Part shown: positions 29,736 through 55,800 of the stretch, piece after piece
How positions within the stretch are numbered: position 1 is the first letter of the stretch
Layout: each line of letters opens with the position of its first letter
Origin: Antechinus flavipes
Lineage: Eukaryota
DNA: 64,000 nucleotides
Reading direction: 5' to 3'
Assembly: GCF_016432865.1 (NCBI RefSeq)
Contig: NC_067401.1
Location: 205,654,001 to 205,718,000, forward strand
Program-made: the position numbers and the translations under genes
Notes under the pieces: model-generated
Told to the model about the DNA's origin: nothing
The model's database searches: none
Seen by the model: the letters and a program-made list of their open reading frames with translations, nothing else

Positions 29736-32700
29736 ATGTTACGGTGGACAGTGCACCTGGAGGGCGGGCCCCGCAGGGTGAATCATGCAGCAGTGTCTGT
29801 GGGGCACCGGGTGTATTCGTTTGGAGGATACTGCTCTGGAGAAGACTATGAGACATTACGCCAGATTGATGTACATGTCTTCAATGCAGGTGAGTGGGAA
29901 TTGCACTGGGTGCTCCGAGAAAAATAGGGTTAGGGAAGATGAAAAGGGCAGAAGGTTAAAGTTTGACAGATATCATCATTCTAAGGAGGAGGGAGAAGAA
30001 TGGTGTTTTAATCCTAGATCCAAGACATAGGTGGATGGGGAAGATGGGGAGGCCAGGAGGGTGCCAGGTCTGAATGGAGCTATGCCTACAGTGTCTCTTC
30101 GTTGGACAAAGCTGCCCCCAATGCGGTCCAGTGGACAAGCTGGGGAAGTGCCCTACATGCGTTATGGACATTCAGCCGTCCTCATTGATGACACTGTCTA
30201 CCTGTGGGGTGGACGCAATGACACAGAAGGAGCCTGCAATGTGCTCTATGGCTTTGATATCAGTGAGTATTGACTCAGCTGCTGAACTTGTACAGATTGT
30301 GTACACATCTTGAGGGGAGGGAGGAGGGAAACTTAAAATATTAGGAAGGAGGAATGAGAAGACCTTAAAGGACAAGAAAATAGTGAAAAATATTGACCAC
30401 TTAGACCCTGACATTCTCTGCTCTTCTTTAGACACCCACAAGTGGTTCACACCCAAGGTTTCTGGAACAGTGCCGGGGGCTCGAGATGGACATTCAGCCT
30501 GTGTCCTGGGCAAGAACATGTATGTCTTCGGGGGTTATGAGCAACTGGTAAGTCCATGAGGAAAAATGGAGAACACTGGAGAATATATATGGAGAAGGAT
30601 GTAGAATTTGTAGGAGGCCTTCACTTGATTGTTAGACTTTGATGGTAATAGGAAATAATTTTTTTTCTCCTCCTCTCATTTCCATTTTCTTTCTCTATGC
30701 TCGCTTTCTCTCTCTCTTTCTCTCTCTCTCTCCTCCATTTAGGCTGACTGTTTTTCCAATGATATCCATAAGCTGGATACCAACAGCATGACATGGACCC
30801 TCATTTCTGCAAAGGTCTGTACTTTTGTATTCTCTTTATATATTTTTTCATTCCTGGATCAATAAAATACAATAACGGGGAGACTGTATTCCTTAAAGCT
30901 CTTACATTACCCTGAACTTTACCAAATCCCTTTTTTCCCTTTCCTTTATTACTTATGCTTGGTTCCCACTTCCATTCCAGTGGAGGACTTGAAAACCATA
31001 AACAATGAGAGAATAAAGACTAGAAACTTTGTTTTGGAAGTGGTAGAAAAAGATCTCAGAGTTTTTCATTTAATAAGGAAGGAATGGTCACTTATTTCTT
31101 TAAACATCCATTCCAGTTCTTCTAATGAATCTTCTCTCCATTTCTACCTCTTCTCAGGGCACTCCTGCACGATGGCGGGACTTTCACTCAGCCACAATGT
31201 TAGGCAACCGCATGTATGTTTTTGGGGGTCGAGCTGACCGATTTGGACCTTTTCACTCCAATAATGAGATCTATTGTAACCGAATACGTATCTTTGACAC
31301 GAGGGCTGAGGCCTGGTTGGAGTGTCCACCTACCCCACTGTTGCCTGAGGGCCGAAGAAGCCACTCTGCTTGTGAGTATCACCCCCCCACCCAAAATTCC
31401 TTTCCTAAACCTCTTTTCTTAACATTCTTTTCCATTTTCAGTTGGGTATAATGGGGAGCTGTACATATTTGGCGGCTACAATGCAAGGTTGAATCGGCAT
31501 TTTCATGATCTCTGGAAGTTCAACCCAGGTAAAGGTCTAGGATGTTGGAGTGGGAAAATCCATAGAATAAGACTGTAGGGATGTCCAGGGTCAAGCAGGG
31601 TGAGAAGAGTGGCTCCTAAGGACTTGGCATTCATTGAGGGAGTAGCTGGAATAGACCGGGGGTTGAATTTGGTGTTTTCCACAACTTCCCCTCAGTGTCC
31701 TTTTCTTGGAAGAAGATTGAGCCTAAGGGAAAGGGGCCATGCCCCCGCCGGCGCCAGTGCTGTTGCATCGTGGGAGACAAGATTGTCCTCTTTGGAGGCA
31801 CTAGGTCAGGATGAAGGGTGCGGGGGAGGGACTTTTGGGATCAGGGAGGAACATAAGACCATAATACTTGCTTAAAGGGGTTTTGGTGGAATGTTCATCT
31901 CCTTATTATGATTTTTTTCAATACCTATAGTCCTTCTCCTGAAGAAGGCCTAGGAGATGAGTTTGATCTCATGGACCACTCCGACCTACACATTCTAGAC
32001 TTTAGTAAGTGTTTCCATTCCCCAAATTCTTTTGCCAAAAGGGATTCATTCCTATGGCAGGGAAATCAGTGCTGTTCTCTTTCCTAAGCCCCTGACTCTC
32101 TTTCTACCTTAGGTCCCAGCCTGAAGACCTTGTGCAAACTGGCTGTGATTCAGTATAACCTGGACCAGACCTGTCTGCCCCATGATATCAGGTACAGAAG
32201 AGAGGATAGGAATACCTGCTCCTTCTATATTTAGTTTCATCCTATCCTGTATCACTTATATAGTACTGTCTTAGATACTGTGCAGTTGGTGAGTGTGGAT
32301 GCAAGCACATTTAGCGTAGCCAGTTTGCAGATAGTCTTAAGGAGAAAGTGAGGCAAGTGGATATCACTATAGTGAGCTTTTACAACTCTAGCATAATTAT
32401 AAGCAATATAAATTGTTCTTTGCTTCTTCCTCTTGATTGCTTATACCAGGTCTATGAATACACTTTTCTCCAGTTGCTCAGACATTTGAATATACAAACA
32501 TAAACAGGATACTAGTACAGATGTGGAGGTGGGGAAAGTGGGTTGTTAGGGTTTACCGATGGGTGGAGTTCAATTGCTATTAAGCCTAGGTTTGTGTGGA
32601 GGAGGGAAGGAATAAGATGTTGATCTTTTAGGAGCTTTGAAGGATTGGGTTTAGTGTAAGAGAATCTATTTCTTGTTCTGTTTACCTCAATCCAGTCTCT

Positions 32701-32796
32701 TGCCTTCTATGCCCTTCCCGGTTTTGCAGGTGGGAGCTGACTGCCATGACCACCAACAGCAACATCAGCCGCCCCATTGCATCATCCCATGGGTAG
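29736..32796 (+). CDS. KLHDC3: Kelch domain-containing protein 3 (CUL2 substrate receptor), 10 coding exons, 380 aa
   Basis: Exons 29736-29889, 30092-30262, 30432-30547, 30743-30814, 31158-31371, 31442-31528, 31696-31804, 31931-32004, 32113-32191, 32730-32796 (1143 nt, in phase). Starts MLRWTVHLEGGPRRVNHAAV; kelch GG motifs; BC-box-like PSLKTLCKLAVIQ near the C-terminus. Confidence 0.97.
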
Positions 32797-33619
32797 GGGG
32801 AAGCCTTCATTGCCTTCCCTACTGATCCTGCTGCTGTCCTCACCACCCCTTCCCATCATTTGCGAGCCTGCCACCATGGGCCCCTGGACTTTGTTCCCCT
32901 GCAGCTGGAGGTGCCGGACTAGGGATTTTTTTCTGTGCTGTGGACTTTTGGAGGGGCAGCTGGGGGAGTACTGGGGCCCTCCCCTTATCTCCTCTCCCCT
33001 GGGGCTCAAGCCCTTTCCCTTTGGTGCTCTTCCCTATCCATCTCATCTTTCCCTTTGATTGTTCCTTAGCATCTGCCCTCTGTTTGGGGCATCCACATAT
33101 TTTATGGGGTTTGAGGGAGGGAAGGTAAGGAAGCATCAGTATCTAAGCATAACTTCACTGCTTCCTCCACCTTTAGGAGAAACCCTTAGCCCCACCTCCT
33201 TAACCCTGCCTGAGCCATGAGTGGTGTCCGGGAGCTAAGAGGTATAGAGCTATTGAATTGAAGTCCTCTCTTCACCCTCCTTGGGGACAGGGGTGCCCAT
33301 CAGGTGATCCCTTCCTCCCCTCATTCCTGACCCACTTACCCCTTCCAGGTTGTTACTGTTCCCTGAAAACCAGCCAGCGCGGATTTTATAAAAATGTGTA
33401 CAAACCCAAAGCAGTGTTGTCTGTTTGTGGGGCACACGGACAGTCCTTCTGGAGGGTGGAAGGATGAAATGGAGGCGGCGGTAGGTTTGATGCCCCCTCC
33501 AAAAAAGGGAGAGCAACACGCTGGGGAGAAGTCACTGCCTTTCGGAAGGGAAGGGACTGAGATCGGAACTGGACCTTCAGCTTCTCATCAAACTAGAGCC
33601 AATCTGTCACCAAAGCCAG

Positions 33620-34800
33620 TCAGTCTTTATTAAGCGCCTACAGTGCGCTAGATGTGGATGCAAATAAAAAAGTGAGACAGTCTCTGCTTTCAGGGAGCTT
33701 ACCTTCTACTGGGGGGATACAACATTCACTAATAAGTAAGTGCCAGATCTATGCAAAATCAATAAAAGATCATTTTCAGGGTACCAACAACTGAGAATAA
33801 TGGAAAGACCCCTGGGAGGAAGTGGCACTTGAATGGACCTTTGAAGGTGTGCAGTGTGTGGGTGTGGGGGAAGGGGAAGTGGTATAGCATTACAGGTATA
33901 AAGAACAGACTTGGCAAAAACAGGGAGATGAAATAGGAAATAAATATATTGGGAAATAGCAAGTAAGCCAGTTTTGATGGAATGTAGAACATGTGAAAAG
34001 GAATTAACATGTAATCAGACTGGAAGGATAAGCTTCAGCTACATTGTGAAGGACTTTTAAGTGCCCAAAGAGGGCTTTGTATTCTAGAGGCAATGGGAAG
34101 CCACACATAGCTTTTGAACATGGGAATGGCATGGTTTTCAAAATGTCATTTTAGCAGCTCTGGGAAGAGGTGGCTTGGAGAGGAAGAGATTGGATGTAGG
34201 GAGACCAATTAGGCTATTGCATTAACCTAGGAGAGCTAGTCCCAGGCTAGTGGCTCTGGGAGTGAAGGAAAAGGGATAGAAGAGATGTGGATGAAGACTG
34301 AATAAGACTAGGTAACTGGTTGACTGGATATATAAGAGTTGGGAGGGAGGGAGTGGGGGGCGGGGGAAGAAAACTTAGCTCATCAGAAAAATGGTAGTGC
34401 CCTCAACAAAATAAGGAAGTTGGATAGGGTGCTTTTAGGGAGAAAAGTCACAAAATTATTTGAGGGGGTCATTTAGGTAAAAATGAATTGTCCTTAAGGC
34501 AGTTGAGGATGTGGAACTGAAGCTCAGGAGAGAAAGTGGAGGCTGAATGTGTAGGTTGGAGGAATCATCTGCAGAGAGATGCTCATGGAACCCATGATGG
34601 TAGAGGAGGCAAGTCATAGAAGATGATCTGCAAAGGAGACTGAAGACTGGTCTGCTAGGAAGGGAATTGTAATAGAGCAGTCTAGGGCTTTGAAAACCTA
34701 GGGAAAACAGCCAGGAGGAGGAAATGCCAGTAATGTAGAAGCTTCTGAAGAGGTCATGGACTAAGAAAAGGCCATTGGATTTCACCACAAAAACATCCTC
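33620..34800 (-). mobile_element. Old LINE-2-like fragments between KLHDC3 and RRP36
   Basis: L2 3'-end motif (CAGTCAGTCTTTATTAAGCGCCTAC...GCTAGATG) followed by degraded L2-like body. Similar L2 ends at about 440-550, 1040-1290 and 15770-17420. Confidence 0.55.
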
Positions 34801-35699
34801 TGGAGAACAGTTTCTGTTGAATCCTGGGAACAGATGGTAAGGTGGAGTGGGGATGAGGATATTTTCTTAGGGTTTGGATACCAGAAAAAGATAAGATAGT
34901 TTGAGAGTAGGGTCAAGTAAAGGCCTTGTAAAGTTAAGAGAACAAGTATCTAGCAAGGGCCTATATTCTTTACAAATATTGCCTCAGTTGATCCTCCTAA
35001 CAACCTTAAGAGGTAGGTGTTGCTGTTATCCCCAATAGTAGTAGAAGAAATGGAGACAGTGGTTAAGTGATTTTGTTCAAGGTCACCCAGTGACTGAGGC
35101 TATATTTGAAGTCTTCCTGGTGTTCTCAGTTCACTGTGTCAAGGGGGAAAAGCCAGGGCTTAAGGAGAGAATCAACTGAGGATTGGGAGCAGATGGTTCT
35201 CAATAGGGCACTGGATCAAATTGAAGGGTTAGCAGTGGACACCTTGGCGAGATGACCTTATCTGAAGTGAGGAACTGGAGAGCTCTCCTTAGGTAGTCTC
35301 AGCTTTCCCCGTGAAGTTGACATTTTGACAGGAAAGGGGGAAGGGGAGAGGCAGTGCTGTGCAGGTGATGCTAGGTTTGGAACAGAGGTCACACGAAGTG
35401 TTAGGAGTCATTTGAAGAAGAGTAAAGGTTCAGCTGCTGTGTAACACATTTGCGGACTCGGGGTGGCTGGGTGTATTTCCGCCGGGTGAATGGGGCCAAG
35501 AGCTTCAAGCAGAAAAACTCGGGACTTGGGGACGAGGGCTAGTACAAGGCTGAACTGGGTGACACCCATGTGGCCCAACATCCGTGACCTGCCCTCTCAC
35601 CTACCCATATAAGGTAGTTACGGCACGGGGGCTGGCACACGGACCAGAAGCCTCCGCTTCTCTCTATTCCCGGGAACCCGTTTTGAGTTAAAAGGTCGT

Positions 35700-35945
35700 C
35701 AGCGCCGCTGGACCACACCTGCTCTAGCATCCAAAGCCTCAGCTTTGGCTCCGCCTTGAGACTGCAGGGCCGGGCCTACTTCCGGCAGACGCTTCGTTCT
35801 GGTTGCCGCCGGAAGGGGTGGTGCTTCGCAGGCCGCCGCGGAAGTGGGGCCGGAGTTGTTTGGAGTGGCATTTTGAGTTTGTGGATGCCGTTGCCGGTGA
35901 AGTTGCGCGGTTCGATGGCCTGTCCTGGCCAGCCTCGGGAACCCA
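35700..35945 (+). promoter_or_regulatory. RRP36 CpG promoter with ETS/GABP-like motifs; CArG box upstream
   Basis: ACTTCCGG (~35778), CCGGAAG (~35808), GCGGAAGT (~35838); CCATATAAGG at 35605-35614; CpG-rich. Confidence 0.6.
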
Positions 35946-38507
35946 ATGGCGGCGGCGGGACCGAGATTGGTGGGTCTGGAGATATCGGGCGGGAAACCTG
36001 GAACCTTAGGGTGGAATGTGTGGTGTGAGTGAACGAGAAGCGGGATCCGGGTGGGCTTAGGTAGAATCAGGCCGGGCCGAGGGCCACCCCCTGAGCGACC
36101 AGCGGCGCCCTCTCCGTTACTTCTTTCAGATCTGGCCGCCATGTCCTTTGAGGAGCTCTTGGAGCTTCAGCGCCGGGTGGGGACCAAACAGTACCGGCAG
36201 CTGACGGGGCAGGTGACGGAGACTCGATCTGAGGATCAGTCGCGGAGGGCAGCCCCCACTCGTGATCACGGGGCCGCAGAGAAGCAAAGGTGGGCGAGGA
36301 TCGGGGGACGGGGCAGGAACCCCACTCTAGGGATACAATCCAGTCCTGCCTCCCCAATGAGCCTTGACCTCTCGGGATGGCACTCCTCGTAGGGGTGAGG
36401 GGAACATATTGAATGATTTTACCCGGTATTCCCCTAATTCTTCCTTTCTGTCACTCTCAGGCCTCTGGAAATGTCTTCGAAGATTCGAGTGCCGTTTTTG
36501 CGGCAGGTCGTTCCTGTCAGAAAGAAGGTGGGATCCCTTGAGCAGACAAAAATCAGGGCTCAGCCATGATAAGATTTTTTGGGCCGATTGTTTGGGTTGG
36601 AATAGAAAGAAGATAGAGAAGATTCTATTTGTCATTCATTAATACAACTCATTGATGACTACTGTTTATTTTACCTGTGCTGTATTTTTCACTCCATCAC
36701 CTTCTGTTTGTTAATACCCATTGCTACAGATCCTTATTATCATCTGTCTGGATCGTTAATAGTGTCCTAATTTTGGCTTTCTTGTTTCTATTTCCTGTTT
36801 CTATGATTCATCCTTTATACTGGTATCAGACTTAATATTTTCCCTTTGGAAAAATCCACTCATGTCTTAGAAGTCTTTGGAGGTTCTCTACTACTGTCCC
36901 ATTGAGTAAAAAGTTCAGACTCCTTTACCTGCCATTCAGTGCCTTTGATAAACTGGCACCATAATATATTCTCTTAATGCATAAAATACCTGAAGAACTG
37001 AATCACTCTGTCTCCAATCACACTATGCTTTCGTTCATGCTGTTCCTTTTGCTTAAAATATCCTTTTCCTTTTATCTACTAAATTCCTACCCATTCTTTA
37101 GACAGGACTCTTAACTTGGAGTCTATCAAGTTTTTATTAAACATTTTCAAAAATTGCATTTCAAATAATTGCTTTCTTTGTTATCATATGTTCTTTCTTG
37201 CATTTAAAAGCATTATTCTGAGAAGGGGTCCTTAGGATTCACTAGACTGTCAAAAGGATCCATGACATAAAAAAGGTTAAGAACTCCTACTATAGTGTTT
37301 TATCTCAAAGTCTACTTCCATCCAATCTTTTCTGACACATAACCTGCTCTTTCACCTTACTTTCCAGTCCATCTTCTACAAGTTATATAGCCACCTAATG
37401 GGTGAATAACAGTTTTCCACAGGCTGTTTGGGCAAGATAGAAGGAAAAAAGCTGATCTTATTTTTCACTTCTTTTGGTATTCTTCACAGGTGGCCCGGGA
37501 CCCTCGATTTGATGACTTGTCAGGGAGTACAATCCTGAAGTGTTTGAGAAGACATACAGATTTTTGAATGAGTATCGTGCAAAGGAAAAGGAGGTGCACA
37601 CAGGGACTAGGCTTTGGGAGTGGAGGGGGAAAGTAGGGTAAACTTGAGCCTGGATTTATGGATAAGAGAGATAAAAGGATACAGGTTATTCCTAACCCTG
37701 GTCTCAGCTTTACAGCTGGTGGCAAAGCATCTAAAGAAGAGCAAGCCAGGAGAAGAACAGGAAAAGCTGAAGCAACTGCTCCATAGAATGGTGAGTAATG
37801 AGACTTCAGACATATCCTCTATATGACTCCTTTCCTTTATGGAGCCTGATACACTTTCACCATTTTTCCTCCTAGGATCAGCAGGAGGCTGCTCAACAGG
37901 AGCAGCAGCGGCAGCAAGAGCAGCGCCTGGCCCTGAAACGGGAACAGAGAGCCCAGGCCCAGCAGGGCCATAGGCCTTACTTTTTGAAGAAATGTGAGTA
38001 GAGGAAATAGCCTTCCAGGCTTTAGTGTGGCTATTGTGTAACTGATTGAATAGTGAAATGGTGAAAACTCATGTGGAGAAGGGCCCTGCTAGTAAAGATG
38101 GTGAAAGACTTGTGTGTGAAGAACAAGTCTTTAGTAACAGGTATTAGGTTCTACATGTTGCTTTTATCTGAAGCAGGGTCCAAGAGGAGAAAATAAAAGA
38201 AAGGGCTTTCTGATAAGAGAATGATACAAGGAACTCACATGACTTTATGGGACCACACAGTGTGAGAAATGTGCTAAGTCAGCACATCCCATTAGGCCCT
38301 TAAAACTAAACAATAGCCTGTGAGATCTTGCCATAGCTCACATTTTCCCCCTGATTCTTTTTAATATTAGCTGAACAGAGGCAGCTGGCACTGGCTGAAA
38401 AATACAAGAAGCTAAAGCGAAGCCAGAAGTTGGAGAGTTTCTTGAGCAGAAAGAGGCGCCGAAATGCTGGAAAAGACCGAAGATGGCTTCCCCTGGGCAA
38501 GGACTAA
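35946..38507 (+). CDS. RRP36: Ribosomal RNA processing protein 36 homolog, 7 exons (~246 aa once a 1-nt deletion in exon 4 is corrected)
   Basis: Exons 35946-36024 (start tentative; donor GGT|GTGAGT gives the needed phase 1), 36130-36289, 36461-36527, 37490-37593 (104 nt, one short of frame), 37716-37790, 37876-37993, 38371-38507. Motifs MSFEELLELQ, RPLEMSSKIRVPFLR, VARDPRFDDLSG, RPYFLKKSEQR, RKRRRNAGKDRR. Confidence 0.93.
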
Positions 38508-38512
38508 ATAAA
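38507..38512 (+). terminator. AATAAA overlapping the RRP36 stop codon
   Basis: Sequence GAC TAA ATAAA: the stop at 38505-38507 shares its last A with AATAAA. Confidence 0.55.
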
Positions 38513-39400: not shown

Positions 39401-39406
39401 TTTATT
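39401..39406 (-). terminator. Probable poly(A) signal of the TMEM121-like gene (and possibly CUL7 read-through)
   Basis: TTTATT on plus, about 260 nt after the stop; the first canonical signal on minus downstream of the CUL7 stop at 41509. Confidence 0.65.
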
Positions 39407-39665: not shown

Positions 39666-40541
39666 TCATGTTGGCCTCACAGCCTGAGCTGGGCCTAAAA
39701 GGCCAGGGTCAGTGGGAGGCTGGGGTGATGGTGGACCAGAAAGCCACTGTTTCCGGTACTGCAGAAACATGCAGAGCTTGAGGGCCAAGGCCAGCAGGTT
39801 CTTTCCTAGAAAGATGCTGGAGACATAGGTATCGTGGAACAGGAGGAGATGAGTGGCCCGGATGAGGCTCGTGGCCAGATTAACCGTGAGCAGGCTGAGG
39901 AGTGGGTAGAGCACCATGCGATGTGGCAGGGGCTGTGGGCCTTGCAGGCTGAGCTCGCCCAGGGCTGCGCACGGCAGCAAGAGCAGCAGGGCATAGCAGT
40001 AGAAGAAGGTGACGCCCTCTGCCCAGAAGGGCAACACCCTCTGAGGTGGCTCCCACAGCCCAGCCTGTACGTCTAAAACATCCAGCAAATCCATGACCAC
40101 CCACAGCAGGTGGCTCCGGAGTTCTTCATGCCATCGGAAGGTTGATAGGATCTCGGGGGTCTTTGGAGATCCCAGCAGGGCAAAGAGTCCAGGCACACTG
40201 AGGGCCAGCACCAGGGTGAAGGCCTGGCGGGCGGGGGGCCCGGGGCAGTGACCCTCAGCCCGGCAGCTCCGGTAAATGAAGTAGACCTTTAACTCTAATA
40301 CAAAGATGTAGAGAAACCAGAGCAACATGGCGCAGCCCCGCCGGGTGGTATGGGCTTGGGCACCAGCACCAGCCACCACAGGGCGAAGCACCAAGATCAG
40401 GCAGATGTTGCCTGCAGAAAGCAGCAACCCCAGACCCAGCCACCAACCTCCTGGGCTCTGTCCCAAGAGATAACCATCGGCCAGCAGCATGCTTCCTGAA
40501 ATGAGGGCCACTACCAGCCATGTGGGGCAAGAGGATACCAT
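39666..40541 (-). CDS. TMEM121-family (CECR6/TMEM121) multi-pass membrane protein, intronless CDS, 291 aa; paralogue of TMEM121
   Basis: ATG at 40541 in strong context (AGG ATG G); the track's 40568 start is a GTG. Blocks AMLLWFLYIFVLELKVYFI, DLLDVLDVQAGLWEP, LPFWAEGVTFFYCY.LLLLLPC, MVLYPLLSL and SSIFLGKN align with TMEM121 as I recall it. About 6-7 hydrophobic segments and a Pro-rich tail. No stops or frameshifts. Confidence 0.92.
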   Translation of the reverse strand: MVSSCPTWLVVALISGSMLLADGYLLGQSPGGWWLGLGLLLSAGNICLILVLRPVVAGAGAQAHTTRRGCAMLLWFLYIFVLELKVYFIYRSCRAEGHCPGPPARQAFTLVLALSVPGLFALLGSPKTPEILSTFRWHEELRSHLLWVVMDLLDVLDVQAGLWEPPQRVLPFWAEGVTFFYCYALLLLLPCAALGELSLQGPQPLPHRMVLYPLLSLLTVNLATSLIRATHLLLFHDTYVSSIFLGKNLLALALKLCMFLQYRKQWLSGPPSPQPPTDPGLLGPAQAVRPT

Positions 40542-40829
40542 CCTGCCAAGCCCTTTGTGTCCACCCACAGCTGGGCATTCCTTCTCGCCCTTTGCCTACT
40601 GCTCTGTCTCTAGCTCCCATTCCCCTTTGTCTTGCCCCTGCCTCGGGTCCTAAGGTGCTGAGCCTCTCCTCCCGCTCTCTTAGGGTGTCCTTCCCCTACT
40701 GCCTGCCTGAGCCAGAGTCTCCCTCCTCCACCCTGGGCCCGCGCATACCCACTCTTTTGTCCCTAGGGACTGTCATGGGTCCCCGGCCCCCTTCTCGCCC
40801 CTCTCTGTCACCTCTCTGGGCAGCCTGCG

Positions 40830-41130
40830 GCTGGTGCTGGCGCTCCGCGCAGGACACGGCCCCGTGTCTCTCCCCATTTCTCAACTCCTTCCTCCCACTA
40901 GGAGGAACCTGGTCCCGCGGCCCCGCCCCTGCCTGGGCTCGGCCCTGGCCTGGGCGTGCCGCTCCGGGCTGCAGTGCGGGCGGGACCCGAGCCGAGGCAA
41001 CTCGGCGGAGCGCAGCGGCGGAAGCGGAGAGGGGCGGGGCCGGGCCGGAGGGCGTTGGGGGAGGGGCTTCGGCTTACTGGGAGATCCCGGGAGGGCCTGC
41101 TAGCTCCCTGTGCAGCGTGCTCGGGTCCCT
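40830..41130 (-). promoter_or_regulatory. CpG island with GC boxes upstream of the TMEM121-like ORF
   Basis: Dense CpG with GGGCGG/CCGCCC motifs (~40921, ~41032) 300-600 nt 5' of the ATG. Confidence 0.65.
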
Positions 41131-41508: not shown

Positions 41509-44500
41509 CTATCGGAAGGTGGAAAAAGTCCGAGCAGGAGGGGAGGGGCTGGGGGTTGTTCGGGTTCGGATCTCCAGGGTGTGGAAGGTAGAGGGTGGGG
41601 CAGGCCCTAAGGCAACCAGGTTGGGGGGTGCAAGGGGAGGCCCCTCTGGCTCCGGAGCTGCATATGCCAGGACTTGGGGCCGGTCTTCCTGCCTTCGAAC
41701 ATAGCCCTGGCCCAGGAGATGGAGGATGCAGGAGAGGACATCGGCCCCATTACACTCATCCTCACCGCCCATGCTGTTGCCCGGGTCTCTCGGGGAAGAC
41801 TGGCCCTTCTGCCAGGCCTCCAGTACCTAGGGACACACAAAGATCATTGTAGTCCAACCTTGTTCTCCGTCGGAATTCCCCCTCAGAACAAGAAAGCCCA
41901 GAGGAGTGCTCTACGTGCCCCCGGATCCACATGTGCCCCTTGGGGTGGGGGCTCTTCATTATGGAGCTGGATATACAGATGCTGCTTCCCAATAACCATC
42001 CCTAGAGAACCCCTAGGTCACCACCTTCCATGGACTTCTTTCCCCCGTACCAGACAGACAAGCTGATCAATATGCAGGCCTTTCTCGCCATGGGCTTTGA
42101 GGATTCGGACAAGGAGGCAGCTCAGGAGGTTCCTCTTCCTCTCCAGGGTTCGGCACTCGTCCTCCTCCACACTCAGGTATGTCTGGGGGGGGAGCAGCCA
42201 CAAGGCCTCCCCCCCAGGCTCCTTCTCCACCTCCCGAAGTCGCAGCACACCTGAGACACATCCACCCAAATCCACCCCCCCACATATACTTATATACTTC
42301 TCTGATTTATGGGATCTGGAGACAGGATATCTATCCTTAGGCTAAGTAGTAAGGCCTAGAATCCCCTGCTCTTTCCTTCCTTCTCCTCCCCTTCTACAAC
42401 TCCCTGTCCTATCCTGAGGAATGTTGTCCTGAATTAGGGCAGAGAAGTCTCCAGCTGCTGTTACCTACCCCCAGGTGGGAGGCCCTGGCCTTCCTGGAGG
42501 GTCAGGGGGCCAAGCCCTGAAGTGAGGGGCTCAAGTGCTTGCATCACAAGCTCTGAGGGCAGGTCTGAGGTCTGCAGCAGAGTCTCCAAGGCCACCTCCT
42601 GGAGAAAGGAATCAGAATCAGCCAGAGTTTGGGATTTTAGGGGTAACCTAGCACTGACCTGAGGGATGAATATCTCCTGCAACTCTGACAAGTATTTTAT
42701 ATCTCTGGAAAAACAGGTTAGTAGTGACAGGGGCAGAGGAGAAAAAAGAAAAGCTTGAGAAAAAGTATGGAAAACAAGAGAGACAGGAGCATTCTCCAAT
42801 TGATAAATGGTCAAAATATGAAGAATTTTGGGAAGAAGAAATCAAAGTAATATGTAGTCATAAAAAATGCTCTAAATTATTATCGATTAGAGAAATACAA
42901 GTTAACACAACTTTGAGGTATCATCTCAACCTATCAAAGTGGTTAAAATGATAGAAGGGGAAAACAACAATTGTTGGAGGGAATGTAGAAAAACTGGCAC
43001 ACTAATAAATTGTTGGTAGAGCTGTGAACTGAACCAACCATTTTGGATAGCAACCTGGAATTATGCCTAAAGAGTTTAAAATTGTGTACATTATTTGACC
43101 CAGAAATAATACTATTAGGTCTTTCCCTAGGTGATGAGGGGAAAAGGAAAGGAATCTTTAAAGCTCTCTTTGTGCTGACAAGGAACTAGAAATTAAGGGT
43201 CCAATAATTGGGGAATGGCAGAAAACAAATTGTGGCATATGATTGTTATGGGATATTGGTGTACTATAAGAAATGATAAGCAGATTGATTTTAGAAAAAC
43301 ATGGAAAGCCTTACATGAAATAGTGAGGACTGAAATGAGCAGAACCAAGAGAATATTGTATTCTGTAACAGCAATATTGTTTGAAGAGACAATATTATCT
43401 GACTAGCTGACAAGCTAAGAATGGCTAAGCTATGACTAAGCTATTCTGAATAATGTGAATATTCAAATCAATCACAAAGCATTTATGAAGGAAAATACTA
43501 TCTGATATACGGAAGTATATATATTATATGGTTCCACATATATATCTATATCAAATGGTAGCCTTTTCTAATATGGAGTTGGGAAACAGACAACTTGGAA
43601 CTCAAAATGTAAAAAAAATTATAAAATGTAAAAAAGAATATAGAAGCAAAGATGGGGATAAAGAGATAGATGGGGGTGGTACCTCCATTTGGTTAAAATG
43701 CAGAAGAAGCCACATCTGTAATGTAGAGACATGAAGAATCTGAGCTCTGAATGACAGTTCGGCCCTGCCCAACCATGACCACTGCAGTAGGCGCTGTGAC
43801 CCCAAGACTGGCCGATTCTGACCTAGTAGATAGGACAAGAAGGAATACTCTATAGCATTCCTTCCCCCTCCAGTACTGTACATAGAATTATAAATTTGAA
43901 ACTTATTTCCTTCTAGGAATTTCAGTGATCTTCTAGTTCAAGTCCATTTTAGAGAGGAGGAAACTGAGTTGGAGAAAGCCAGGTGATTTGCTCTGGGGAC
44001 ACCCAAGTAAGAAATGGCAGAGTCAGAATATGAACTCAGGTCTGTTAGCTCCAAACAGAACAATCGTCCCACGGTATCACCGGCCTATGGTTCTGTGTGT
44101 CTATCTCTCAATCAGTCAATTTATATTTGTGGATAATCTGATGTGTCTGCAATCTCATTTTGGTAGTTCCAACAGTGCAGATTGAAACCTATCCATGTCT
44201 ACTCATCCTCATTCCTGTCCTCCTGAAAATCTGCCCTATGCATGGTGATTGGAGTTCTTAATGACAGTAATAACAGCTGATCTTTTATACAGAGCTCTAA
44301 AGTTTACAAAGAACCTTTTAATCTCTTATTTACAGAAGAGTCTTAAAAATGTCTACTGGGACAGGTAGATGATGCAGTATACAGAGCACCGACCCCAGAG
44401 TCAGGAGGAGCTGAGCTCAAATCTGGCCTCAGATACATTAATAGTTACTAGCTGTGTATGAGAGAGACAGGCAGAGGGGAGAGACAAAGACAGGGAGACA

Positions 44501-52839: not shown

Positions 52840-55800
52840 ATTTGTAAATTCAAAATAAATTTAAAAAAAAGAAATCAGGCACAGAAAAAAATAACCTCTG
52901 ATCAATCAGATCATTAGCCCAGCCCCGCTTCACCAAACTAGGTTACTAGCCTATGTGCTGTTCTTCTTTCCTTCCCCTTCCTCTCTTGCTCTAAACTCAC
53001 ACTCTGACCCAGCCTCATCTCCTACCCCTTATCTGTCTTCTTCTCCTCATCTCCTCATCTCCTACCCCTTATCTGTCTTCTTCTCCCTAGACTCTACCTG
53101 CCTCCTTTCCATCTTCTCCCCAGTTCTATCCCCTTCATCTACCATCCTCCTAACCTGGATGCAGCCGGCCAAGATGCTTTTGGTGAGGTTGCTATAAAGC
53201 TGGGCGTGCTTCTCATATTCGCCCACTAGATCTTGGAGCTCAGAGCCCAGAAACAGTTGTTCCTTGTGCTTGTCCAGGGCCTTGGTGAGAATCTCTCGAG
53301 CTCCCAGCTGGCACAGAACCACTGCGCAGTCCTTGTGGAGTGTGACCAGGCGATGCAGGAAACAAATTAATCCCTGGACCACCTAGAATGGATATCGAGG
53401 CAGTGTAGGATCAAGGTTGTTACTGAGGCCCTCTTGCTGTGGATGCCCTATTGACCATCCTGCCAAGAGGAAGATAAACCTTATTTTGCCACTTTCCATT
53501 CAAATCAACTAATTGACAAGCATTTATTAAGCATTTGCTGTGTGCCAGGTAGTGGGCTACATATCCAGTACCCATCTGGGGGTGCCTGGGGCTCAGCTCT
53601 CCTTAGCCACAAGCTCCTCCTAATTGAGGTTACTAAGAACACCACCCAGGTATCCATGGGTGCATCTGGCTGTGTGAAACTGAGAACCCCCAGGGTGGCC
53701 AATGTTCCAGGAATCTCTGGACTTTCTCCGGCCCCTACCCTCTAGGTACCTCATGGTCTTTGTTGAGTGTTCTCAGGCTGGCCAAACAGGAGGAGGCCAC
53801 TTTGTGCCAAGGAAGAGTTGAGTCCACACAGACATCCAGGAGACAGCTCAGTATTCTGAGAGTCCAGGAAGAAGGGTTTCAGATGAGAAGATGGACACAT
53901 AGATTGAATGTCAGGACCATATTTGTTACTCTCTTTTATACTTCAACACTCTACTTCCCACTTTATACTCCAAAGAGAAGAAGGATGGGTTGGGTGAAAT
54001 ATAGGTTGGGTTACAATGACTAGAAACCAGCAATTTGCTTATGCAAAATTTATTAAATCAGTATTATTATTCCCATTTTACAGGTGAGGAAACTGAGGCA
54101 AACCCGTTAAGTGACTTGGCATGGGTCACAAAGTGAAAAAGTATCTGAGGCTGGATTTGAACTAAGGCTGGCACTCTACCACTGAGCCACCCAGCTGACC
54201 CTAATGGAGAGTTTGGACTAGATGTTGTAAAGTATTTTCTAACATGAAATTTTATACTAAAAACTCCAACACTGTATAGTCTATCTTGTAATGTTATATA
54301 TTCTAAAATCCCTCCCAGATCCTATGTTCTATGCAGGAATATTTTAATTCTAAGATCCCATCCAGCTCTGACATTTCAATTCTTTGTTTTTGATAAGGAG
54401 GGGTTTGTGCAAATACTCAGGTGTCTGCATGACTGAATGGAAAGAATCCTGGATTTGGGGACAGCAAATATAGGTTCTAGATCTAGCACTGTCATTTACT
54501 CCCTATGTTATCTTTTGAGTCTCCATTTCATTTTTCTGGCTCTCCATTTCTTCCCTTTATAAAATGAGGGGCACTGAATGAGATGAACTCTAAAATCCTA
54601 TATTTCTTTTTTGCTGCCATTTTTTTCAGATTACCTAGAGGAGGCCATGGGCAGTAGTGGGGCTGCTGCACATTTGTAAACGTGCACAACCATCTGCCTG
54701 GTATACCTCTGAGAAAGGGCATGCAGGCTGTGTGTGCACATCAGGGAGAGCCTGCCTAACCACTCAGGTAAATGAGATTGCAGTGTATAGATTGATGTAG
54801 GCTCCCTCCCTGGACTCCACCTCCAGCTTTTTAGCTAGAGTCCACGAAGATAAAACTACCAGTTTACCAGATGAATAACAGCAATAACAATCGCCAACAT
54901 TTATATGACATGTTAAAGTATGCAAAGTACTTTACAAATGTTATCTCATCTCATACTCACAACAACCCTAGAAAGTAGGTAATATTATTAACCCCATTTT
55001 GCAAATGGGCTAATAGGCAGAGACCTTTTCCAGGTCCATATTGTTAGTAAGTATATGGGGTAGGATCTGAATTCGGGTCTTCCTGACTCTAACGCTTTCT
55101 CTAACTACTTAACTGCCTCTGAGGCAAGAAGACAATCTCATGGGGGTGAACATAGTCCTCTTTGCTTGTTTACTTGTTTTCCTTCCAAACTCCTGGCTGC
55201 CCCCACCCCTACCCGCATCCCCTCACCTCAGCCCAGTCATTTGAAGGGCCTTGTTCTCGGGGGTCTCCAGGTTCTGTAGCAGCAGCAGGAAGGCTTGGGG
55301 CTGGTGCTGGAGCTGCCCCAGGAGCCGGCTCACTTGACCCTCCCCAATGCCCTCCTGGCATATGCTTAACTCCAGCTCCAGGAGCTGCTGTCCAGAGGGC
55401 TCTGCAGCCCCCATGAGGCTCCGAAACAGCAGCTCAGCTGCAGCCCCAACAAACATAGGGTGAAGAAAGGGGGTGACAAGAGTTGGCTAGACTTAGAGAG
55501 ATGAAGACCCTAGAAAATAAACTGGAAACATTTTTTCCCCTTCAATAAATGAATCAGGGGGAAGAAAGCAGTTTTTGGTTACCTTCCATTCAAAAGTCAT
55601 GGGCCAAATGTTATTGTTCCCTGCTGATTACCTACCCCACCCCAAATTTTGCCAGATTTTTGCCTCTATAGGTCTTTACATGTTCCAACAGAAAAAAACA
55701 AAAACAAAATATGATTTTATAGAGGAAGTGGAACATATACTATGGAGCAGATTATATGTTTTTAAATTAACAAAGAGACTTTACTTCCATAAAATATTAA

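Follow-up and report, generated by a model that had tools for sequence, protein, structure and literature searches.

There are three close clades of TMEM121-type genes in jawed vertebrates (here termed A, B and D), which were distinguished by protein searches together with a phylogenetic tree and are approximately 65-70% identical to one another. Clade A is TMEM121 itself, which is called 'hole' in chicken and is located at 14q32.33 in humans. In placentals, TMEM121 is found next to TEDC1, as fused gene models indicate. The placental gene models P0191 and P0202-P0205 fuse these two genes (Pfam families PF14970 and PF14997), which is probably the result of read-through of adjacent genes.

The members of clade B carry several names. 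They are termed 'TMEM121-like' by NCBI, TMEM121L by Weng et al. and tmem264 in fish annotations, and the name TMEM121L is used here. Mentions of 'TMEM264' in mammalian papers were rejected as evidence for this gene, as they stand for TMEM263 or TMEM265 by typographical error, or arise from TMEM26 with a reference number appended, and only the zebrafish tmem264 is real. Clade B representatives are found in sharks, ray-finned fish, coelacanth, lungfish, amphibians (salamander and caecilians), turtles, crocodilians (alligator), squamates and many birds, and across jawed vertebrates, those outside marsupials share 66-88% identity with the turtle copy. The gene order in chicken, Anolis and zebrafish has been described as KLHDC3-NPAS4L-RRP36-TMEM121L, and the NPAS4L/TMEM121L pair is stated to be missing from mammalian genomes (Weng et al., PMC7604627). 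Zebrafish tmem264 has also been reported to adjoin npas4l (PMC9432843).

Clade D has representatives in coelacanth, bichir, bowfin, gar, salamanders, a caecilian and squamates, and it includes a long-branch group of teleost sequences that are called 'TMEM265' in UniRef. In gecko (L001 10001-11320) and bowfin (L006 and L007, 10001-10969), MRPL11 encloses the gene, which is encoded on the other strand. Human MRPL11 is presumably located next to NPAS4 at 11q13. If so, a TMEM121-type gene and an NPAS4-type gene would lie together in each of two paralogous regions.

In this report we describe a further member of this family from Antechinus flavipes. It is located in the window, which is the whole 64,000-nucleotide stretch of DNA that was analysed. 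The gene is an uninterrupted open reading frame (ORF) of 291 amino acids on the minus strand, wherein the ATG start codon occupies positions 40541-40539 and the TGA stop codon occupies positions 39668-39666. An in-frame TAG is located 18 codons 5' of this ATG, and there is no earlier ATG. The start context has an A at position -3 and a G at position +4, which makes it a strong Kozak context. The Pfam profile PF14997 (CECR6_TMEM121) matches the translated ORF over profile positions 3-194 of 194 with an E-value of 4.7e-45 and a score of 154.3 bits. The curated threshold for this profile is 25 bits, and therefore the match is far above chance. Exon-sized ORFs show that the neighbours on the plus strand are PPP2R5D, KLHDC3 and RRP36, and that the minus strand carries a CUL7/CUL9-type gene. 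A CUL7/CUL9 ARM exon of the latter is recognized by Pfam at 53065-53382 (minus strand), and its last coding exon ends near 41509 as judged by alignment to the called end of CUL7 in Dromiciops. The relevant features of the window are as follows:

39666 to 40541, minus strand: single-exon coding sequence of the marsupial orthologue of TMEM121L/tmem264, 291 amino acids plus TGA; ORF, PF14997 match, 88-91% DNA identity to Dromiciops and dN/dS of 0.09.
40800 to 41100, no strand assigned: small CpG island and putative promoter between the CUL7 stop codon and the ATG; GC content of 0.74, CpG observed/expected ratio of 0.70, and 74-77% identity to Dromiciops over 41017-40729, above that of neighbouring intergenic blocks.
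40542 to 40636, minus strand: conserved stretch directly 5' of the ATG, likely 5' UTR, with the Kozak context GGCAGGATGG; 84% gap-free identity to Dromiciops.
39401 to 39406, minus strand: AATAAA polyadenylation signal, 260 nucleotides past the TGA and conserved in Dromiciops (L005 11124).
38355 to 38504, plus strand: final coding exon of the convergent neighbour RRP36, a marker of the conserved position; Pfam RRP36 match with an E-value of 1.7e-8, and matches to RRP36 exons beside the clade B gene in milkfish and guinea fowl.
41512 to 41826, minus strand: open frame that contains the final coding exon of CUL7, which precedes TMEM121L on this strand; 86-94% gap-free identity to Dromiciops over 41803-41504 up to the end of the called CUL7 gene (L005 8807), and no Pfam match of its own.

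An earlier, sequence-only reading of this DNA had described an intact 291-amino acid ORF with a strong Kozak context, its own CpG island and a downstream AATAAA, and all of these elements are present in the window. It had also placed the ORF between RRP36 and CUL7, and had assigned its product to the TMEM121 family as a multi-pass membrane protein. The ORF does lie between the last exons of these two genes, the profile match covers the whole PF14997 domain, and an AlphaFold2 model of the protein (discussed below) has eight long helices. We consider it probable that this is a working protein-coding gene, and that it is the fast-evolved marsupial orthologue of vertebrate TMEM121L/tmem264, kept at the ancestral position beside RRP36.

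The exact Antechinus protein is already present in NCBI and UniRef, and its orthologues are annotated as 'transmembrane protein 121-like' in Gracilinanus, Monodelphis, Macrotis, Dromiciops, Sarcophilus, Sminthopsis, Trichosurus, Notamacropus, Vombatus and Phascolarctos. Thus, what is new here is modest, namely the orthology assignment and the correction of the statement that the gene is missing in mammals. The proposal of the sequence-only reading that the gene is kept in marsupials is borne out, as the ORF is intact in 11 species that represent several orders. Its position was the same in the four others examined (Macrotis, Dromiciops, Gracilinanus and Vombatus), wherein CUL7 and TMEM121L lie on one strand and are followed by KLHDC3/RRP36 on the opposite strand. 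Among 10 marsupial proteins that were compared, pairwise identity is at least 86.6% and 209 of the 291 columns are invariant. The closest relative of the Antechinus protein is that of Sarcophilus (97%).

The NCBI model of the Dromiciops protein (269 amino acids) is a spliced prediction, and the DNA itself carries a continuous frame of 308 amino acids (L005 9956-10927). The Dromiciops stop codon is located later than that in the window, which indicates that the length of the C-terminal tail varies among marsupials. In the part of the Dromiciops locus that is equivalent to the gap between the CUL7 stop codon and TMEM121L, only two weak AATAGA variants are found among the polyadenylation hexamers.

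Transcription of the window gene is predicted to run most likely from the CpG island, located 260-560 bp 5' of the ATG, to the AATAAA at 39406-39401. When the minus strand from 41520 to 39300 was scanned for 12 common polyadenylation hexamers, this was the sole match. On the plus strand, an AATAAA at 38507 is located almost directly after the last RRP36 coding exon, which ends at 38504 (region 38504-38512). This adjacency suggests that the 3' UTR of RRP36 may be very short. The convergent RRP36 and TMEM121L ends may therefore lie within about 900 bp of each other.

The best-surviving alternative is about the mode of expression of the ORF and not about its identity. Perhaps the ORF is not independent, but is instead carried towards the 3' end of read-through transcripts from CUL7, with any translation product derived from a bicistronic or alternative CUL7 mRNA. 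It shares its strand with CUL7 and begins approximately 970 bp downstream of the CUL7 stop codon (near 41509). Moreover, none of the 12 common hexamers is found on the minus strand between that stop codon and the AATAAA at 39406, which is located beyond the ORF. Thus, CUL7 transcripts may traverse TMEM121L or use an unusual signal. However, the CpG island and a conserved block intervene between the two genes, the start codon of TMEM121L resides in a strong Kozak context, and the NCBI pipelines call a separate gene in each of 11 marsupials. Furthermore, the guinea fowl orthologue is located behind a PACS-family gene rather than behind CUL7. We consider read-through expression to be unlikely.

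The orthology of this gene is decided by its genomic position. In the window, TMEM121L and RRP36 are convergent and their stop codons are separated by 1.16 kb. This is the arrangement of the clade B gene in milkfish, wherein RRP36 is located 8.8 kb downstream on the opposite strand, and in guinea fowl, wherein RRP36 is located 2.8 kb downstream on the opposite strand and is followed by a PAS-domain gene. The RRP36 exons of the window match both of these loci collinearly. The sequence-only reading had pointed to syntenic copies in outgroups as informative, and such tail-to-tail copies exist in both species as well as in the published chicken, Anolis and zebrafish map. At the bowfin clade B locus, no neighbouring gene was found within 10 kb.

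The window gene resembles other clade B members not only in being convergent with RRP36, but also in having a single continuous coding sequence, as in bowfin and milkfish, and an eight-helix domain. It differs from them in several respects. Its protein is only 45-51% identical to those of clade B and has replacements at 41 of the 144 family-conserved positions, and its codons are richer in GC at positions 1 and 2. It is also preceded by CUL7, whereas a PACS-family gene is found at this place in guinea fowl (L004 1-5235). Human PACS2 is presumably located near TMEM121 at 14q32.33, which would add one more pair common to the TMEM121 and TMEM121L regions. Finally, the usual neighbour NPAS4L, located beyond RRP36, is missing from the window. 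A search of the KLHDC3-RRP36 gap (32200-36000) for PAS/bHLH coding potential that might represent an NPAS4L remnant found none. This difference reflects a lost neighbour and is not a property of TMEM121L itself.

The phylogenetic evidence agrees with placement in clade B, but long-branch effects are in play and sequence alone is not decisive. In a quick tree, the marsupial genes were left unplaced at the base among long branches. This result was superseded by a more careful analysis with IQ-TREE under the LG+C20 mixture model, wherein the marsupial genes fall inside clade B (support 80/92) and group with the clade B genes of sauropsids (support 68/99), as expected from the species tree. In approximately unbiased (AU) tests, neither a grouping of the marsupial genes with TMEM121 (p 0.079) nor one with clade D (p 0.095) is rejected. 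Columns that are diagnostic for individual clades were also inspected. The marsupial proteins match none of the eight TMEM121-specific states and none of the five clade D-specific states. Clade B-specific columns number only two, and the marsupial proteins match one of these.

A true TMEM121 is found separately in marsupials. It is represented by a Petaurus protein (P0211) that is 91% identical to pangolin TMEM121, and by a Monodelphis protein (P0129). Because marsupials have this gene as well, TMEM121L is not the TMEM121 orthologue in a new location, nor does it derive from TMEM121 by recent copying. Identity of the window gene as TMEM121 proper was likewise rejected, since it is only 46-52% identical to TMEM121, compared with 91% between marsupial and placental TMEM121, and since Monodelphis has a TMEM121 of its own besides TMEM121L. 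The sequence-only reading had proposed a paralogue of TMEM121 that is not nested among marsupial TMEM121 genes. This agrees with the tree, and the slowly evolving TMEM121 genes of Petaurus and Monodelphis show that the window gene is not a translocated true orthologue.

A related possibility is that a marsupial-specific duplicate of TMEM121, such as a retrocopy, was inserted between RRP36 and CUL7 and then diverged rapidly. The coding sequence has no intron, its product is no less similar to TMEM121 than to clade B proteins, and the AU test leaves a grouping with TMEM121 standing. However, the clade B genes of bowfin and milkfish and the clade D genes of gecko and bowfin also have single continuous ORFs, and thus the intronless coding sequence says little about a retrocopy origin. 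In addition, such a duplicate would have had to land in exactly the position and orientation relative to RRP36 that the clade B gene occupies in guinea fowl, milkfish and the published maps of chicken, lizard and zebrafish, while the best tree places the marsupial genes with sauropsid clade B and no TMEM121-specific residue state is seen. We therefore regard this origin as very improbable, and assign the gene to clade B.

TMEM121L is clearly maintained under strong purifying selection in marsupials, as the sequence-only reading had suspected. Comparison of the Antechinus ORF with the full Dromiciops ORF (L005 10001-10927), which is a single species pair, yields a dS of 0.43, a dN of 0.038 and an omega of 0.089, which is not near 1. 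Omega falls to 0.06 when residues 1-270 are taken alone, and reaches 0.55 in the C-terminal tail. The coding DNA is 88-91% identical between the two species and has no indel, whereas the intergenic flanks are full of gaps. It is hardly credible that the ORF is a decaying relic that is open by chance and functionless in marsupials, for although its stem is very long, one in four of the family-conserved positions has changed and the tail evolves almost freely, the low omega over residues 1-270 at this dS, the lack of indels over about 800 bp despite indel-rich flanks, the intact ORF in 11 species from several marsupial orders, and the 42 columns (including an FYCY motif and most charged residues) that are invariant across 50 family members all argue against this.

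The constraint seen today follows a burst of change. In the IQ-TREE analysis, the marsupial stem has a length of 2.32 substitutions per site, compared with 0.05-0.08 for the tips. Conservation of 90% or more among 33 slow members of clades A, B and D defines 144 positions, and at 41 of these marsupials are fixed for another residue. The replacements are mostly found in the N-terminal half of the protein, and those that remove a charge include E27G, R33W, K34W, D45N, K137W and R239Y. The GC content at codon position 2 of the window gene is 0.46, compared with 0.33-0.39 in clade B orthologues, and position 1 is also richer in GC.

The 42 columns that are invariant across the 50 aligned family members, the window protein included, contain the residues D22, R53, R68, K85, W147, D151, D154, W163-E164, F180-Y-C-Y183, P190, E196, N221, R228 and K247-N248. 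The sequence-only reading had proposed that the core motifs are preserved while the loops have diverged. Its first part stands, as these columns are all retained, but the divergence extends beyond the loops to the replaced family-conserved positions. Since the replacements are fixed and the family-invariant columns are all kept, the change predates the divergence of living marsupials and then stopped.

Rate bursts are found elsewhere in the family. The Discoglossus pictus copy (P0031, 303 amino acids) is a member of clade B with a branch of 1.89 substitutions per site, whereas the clade B copies of salamander and caecilians are slow. This is a second, independent rate burst in clade B. Long stems are also seen in clade D, both for squamates (1.18) and for teleosts (1.65). 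Clade D, a third close paralogue, resembles the window gene in its rate bursts, but is distinguished by its location at MRPL11 and not at RRP36.

The burst on the marsupial stem may have been caused by relaxed constraint, biased gene conversion or a new function. One specific scenario, which we offer tentatively and consider possible though somewhat doubtful, is that TMEM121L came under new selection on the marsupial stem, beyond a mere relaxation of constraint, after NPAS4L was lost in mammals. Approximately 40 positions that had been frozen since before the split between sharks and bony fish would then have been remodelled for a therian-specific or marsupial-specific task, perhaps with co-expression with CUL7, and placentals would have dispensed with the gene.

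The AlphaFold2 model of the window protein, with its eight long helices, has a pLDDT of 74 and a pTM of 0.73. It suggests a membrane protein of about eight helices with the TMEM121 fold, as superposition on the models of mouse, human and chicken TMEM121 gives TM scores of 0.82-0.85. TMEM121 thus shares both its Pfam family and its predicted fold with the window protein, but occupies another locus. Matches among predicted structures are limited to TMEM121, TMEM121B and, weakly, TMEM26 and TMEM236. TMEM121B (CECR6) is by name a member of this Pfam family, with a TM score of 0.67 relative to the query, but it is twice as long and only 19-20% identical by structural alignment. Probably because of this low identity, TMEM121B was not recovered by two word-based searches or by an exhaustive HMMER search, and the tree was built without it. 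Its kinship to TMEM121L is therefore far more remote, and TMEM121L did not arise from it. TMEM26 and TMEM236 match the predicted fold with TM scores of only 0.46-0.59, and at 12-14% identity they have no detectable sequence relation to the window protein. We know of no function for either protein, and thus they give no mechanistic clue.

Among solved structures, only generic helix-bundle matches were found, with Foldseek E-values above 0.5. The best VIA-align match was to designed GPCR-like folds (Z 12.4, 7.5 Å rmsd), which is within the noise for helical models. Therefore, there is no mechanism to borrow from solved structures. To our knowledge, the CECR6/TMEM121 family also has no known molecular activity. 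TMEM121 has been reported to restrain cardiac hypertrophy, and its overexpression or knockdown alters the phosphorylation of AKT, p38 and JNK (PMC9366253). By analogy with this paralogue, which is about 50% identical, TMEM121L might be a non-enzymatic membrane modulator of kinase signalling whose partners are altered in marsupials, although we have low confidence in this proposal.

These observations suggest the following history. TMEM121L and TMEM121 separated before the divergence of cartilaginous and bony fish, probably in the early vertebrate genome duplications, and an origin by whole-genome duplication, as the sequence-only reading had also proposed, is plausible. The ancestral TMEM121L was positioned tail-to-tail with RRP36, with NPAS4L adjoining. 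In marsupials, TMEM121L was retained at this ancestral spot, now directly downstream of CUL7, while NPAS4L was lost. In placentals, both genes were apparently lost. Protein searches with the marsupial protein, pangolin TMEM121 and turtle clade B recovered no clade B protein from placentals or monotremes, and these searches, together with one published sentence (PMC7604627), are the basis on which TMEM121L seems to have been lost in placentals. On the marsupial stem, TMEM121L changed very rapidly, with replacement of about one quarter of the family-conserved positions and a shift to GC-rich codons, and after this burst it has been subject to the strong purifying selection described above.

The wider impact of these findings is limited for now because the CECR6/TMEM121 family has no known molecular activity. 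The claim in the literature that mammals lack the NPAS4L/TMEM121L pair can nevertheless be qualified, since marsupials lost NPAS4L and kept TMEM121L, and a marsupial gene that was listed only as 'TMEM121-like' gains a proper name and orthology. In addition, the close relatives of TMEM121 fall into three old paralogues, each with its own conserved location: TMEM121 adjoins TEDC1 (in placentals), clade B adjoins RRP36, and clade D resides within MRPL11. The rate burst followed by stasis in marsupial TMEM121L also offers a clean case in which to weigh relaxed constraint against new function.
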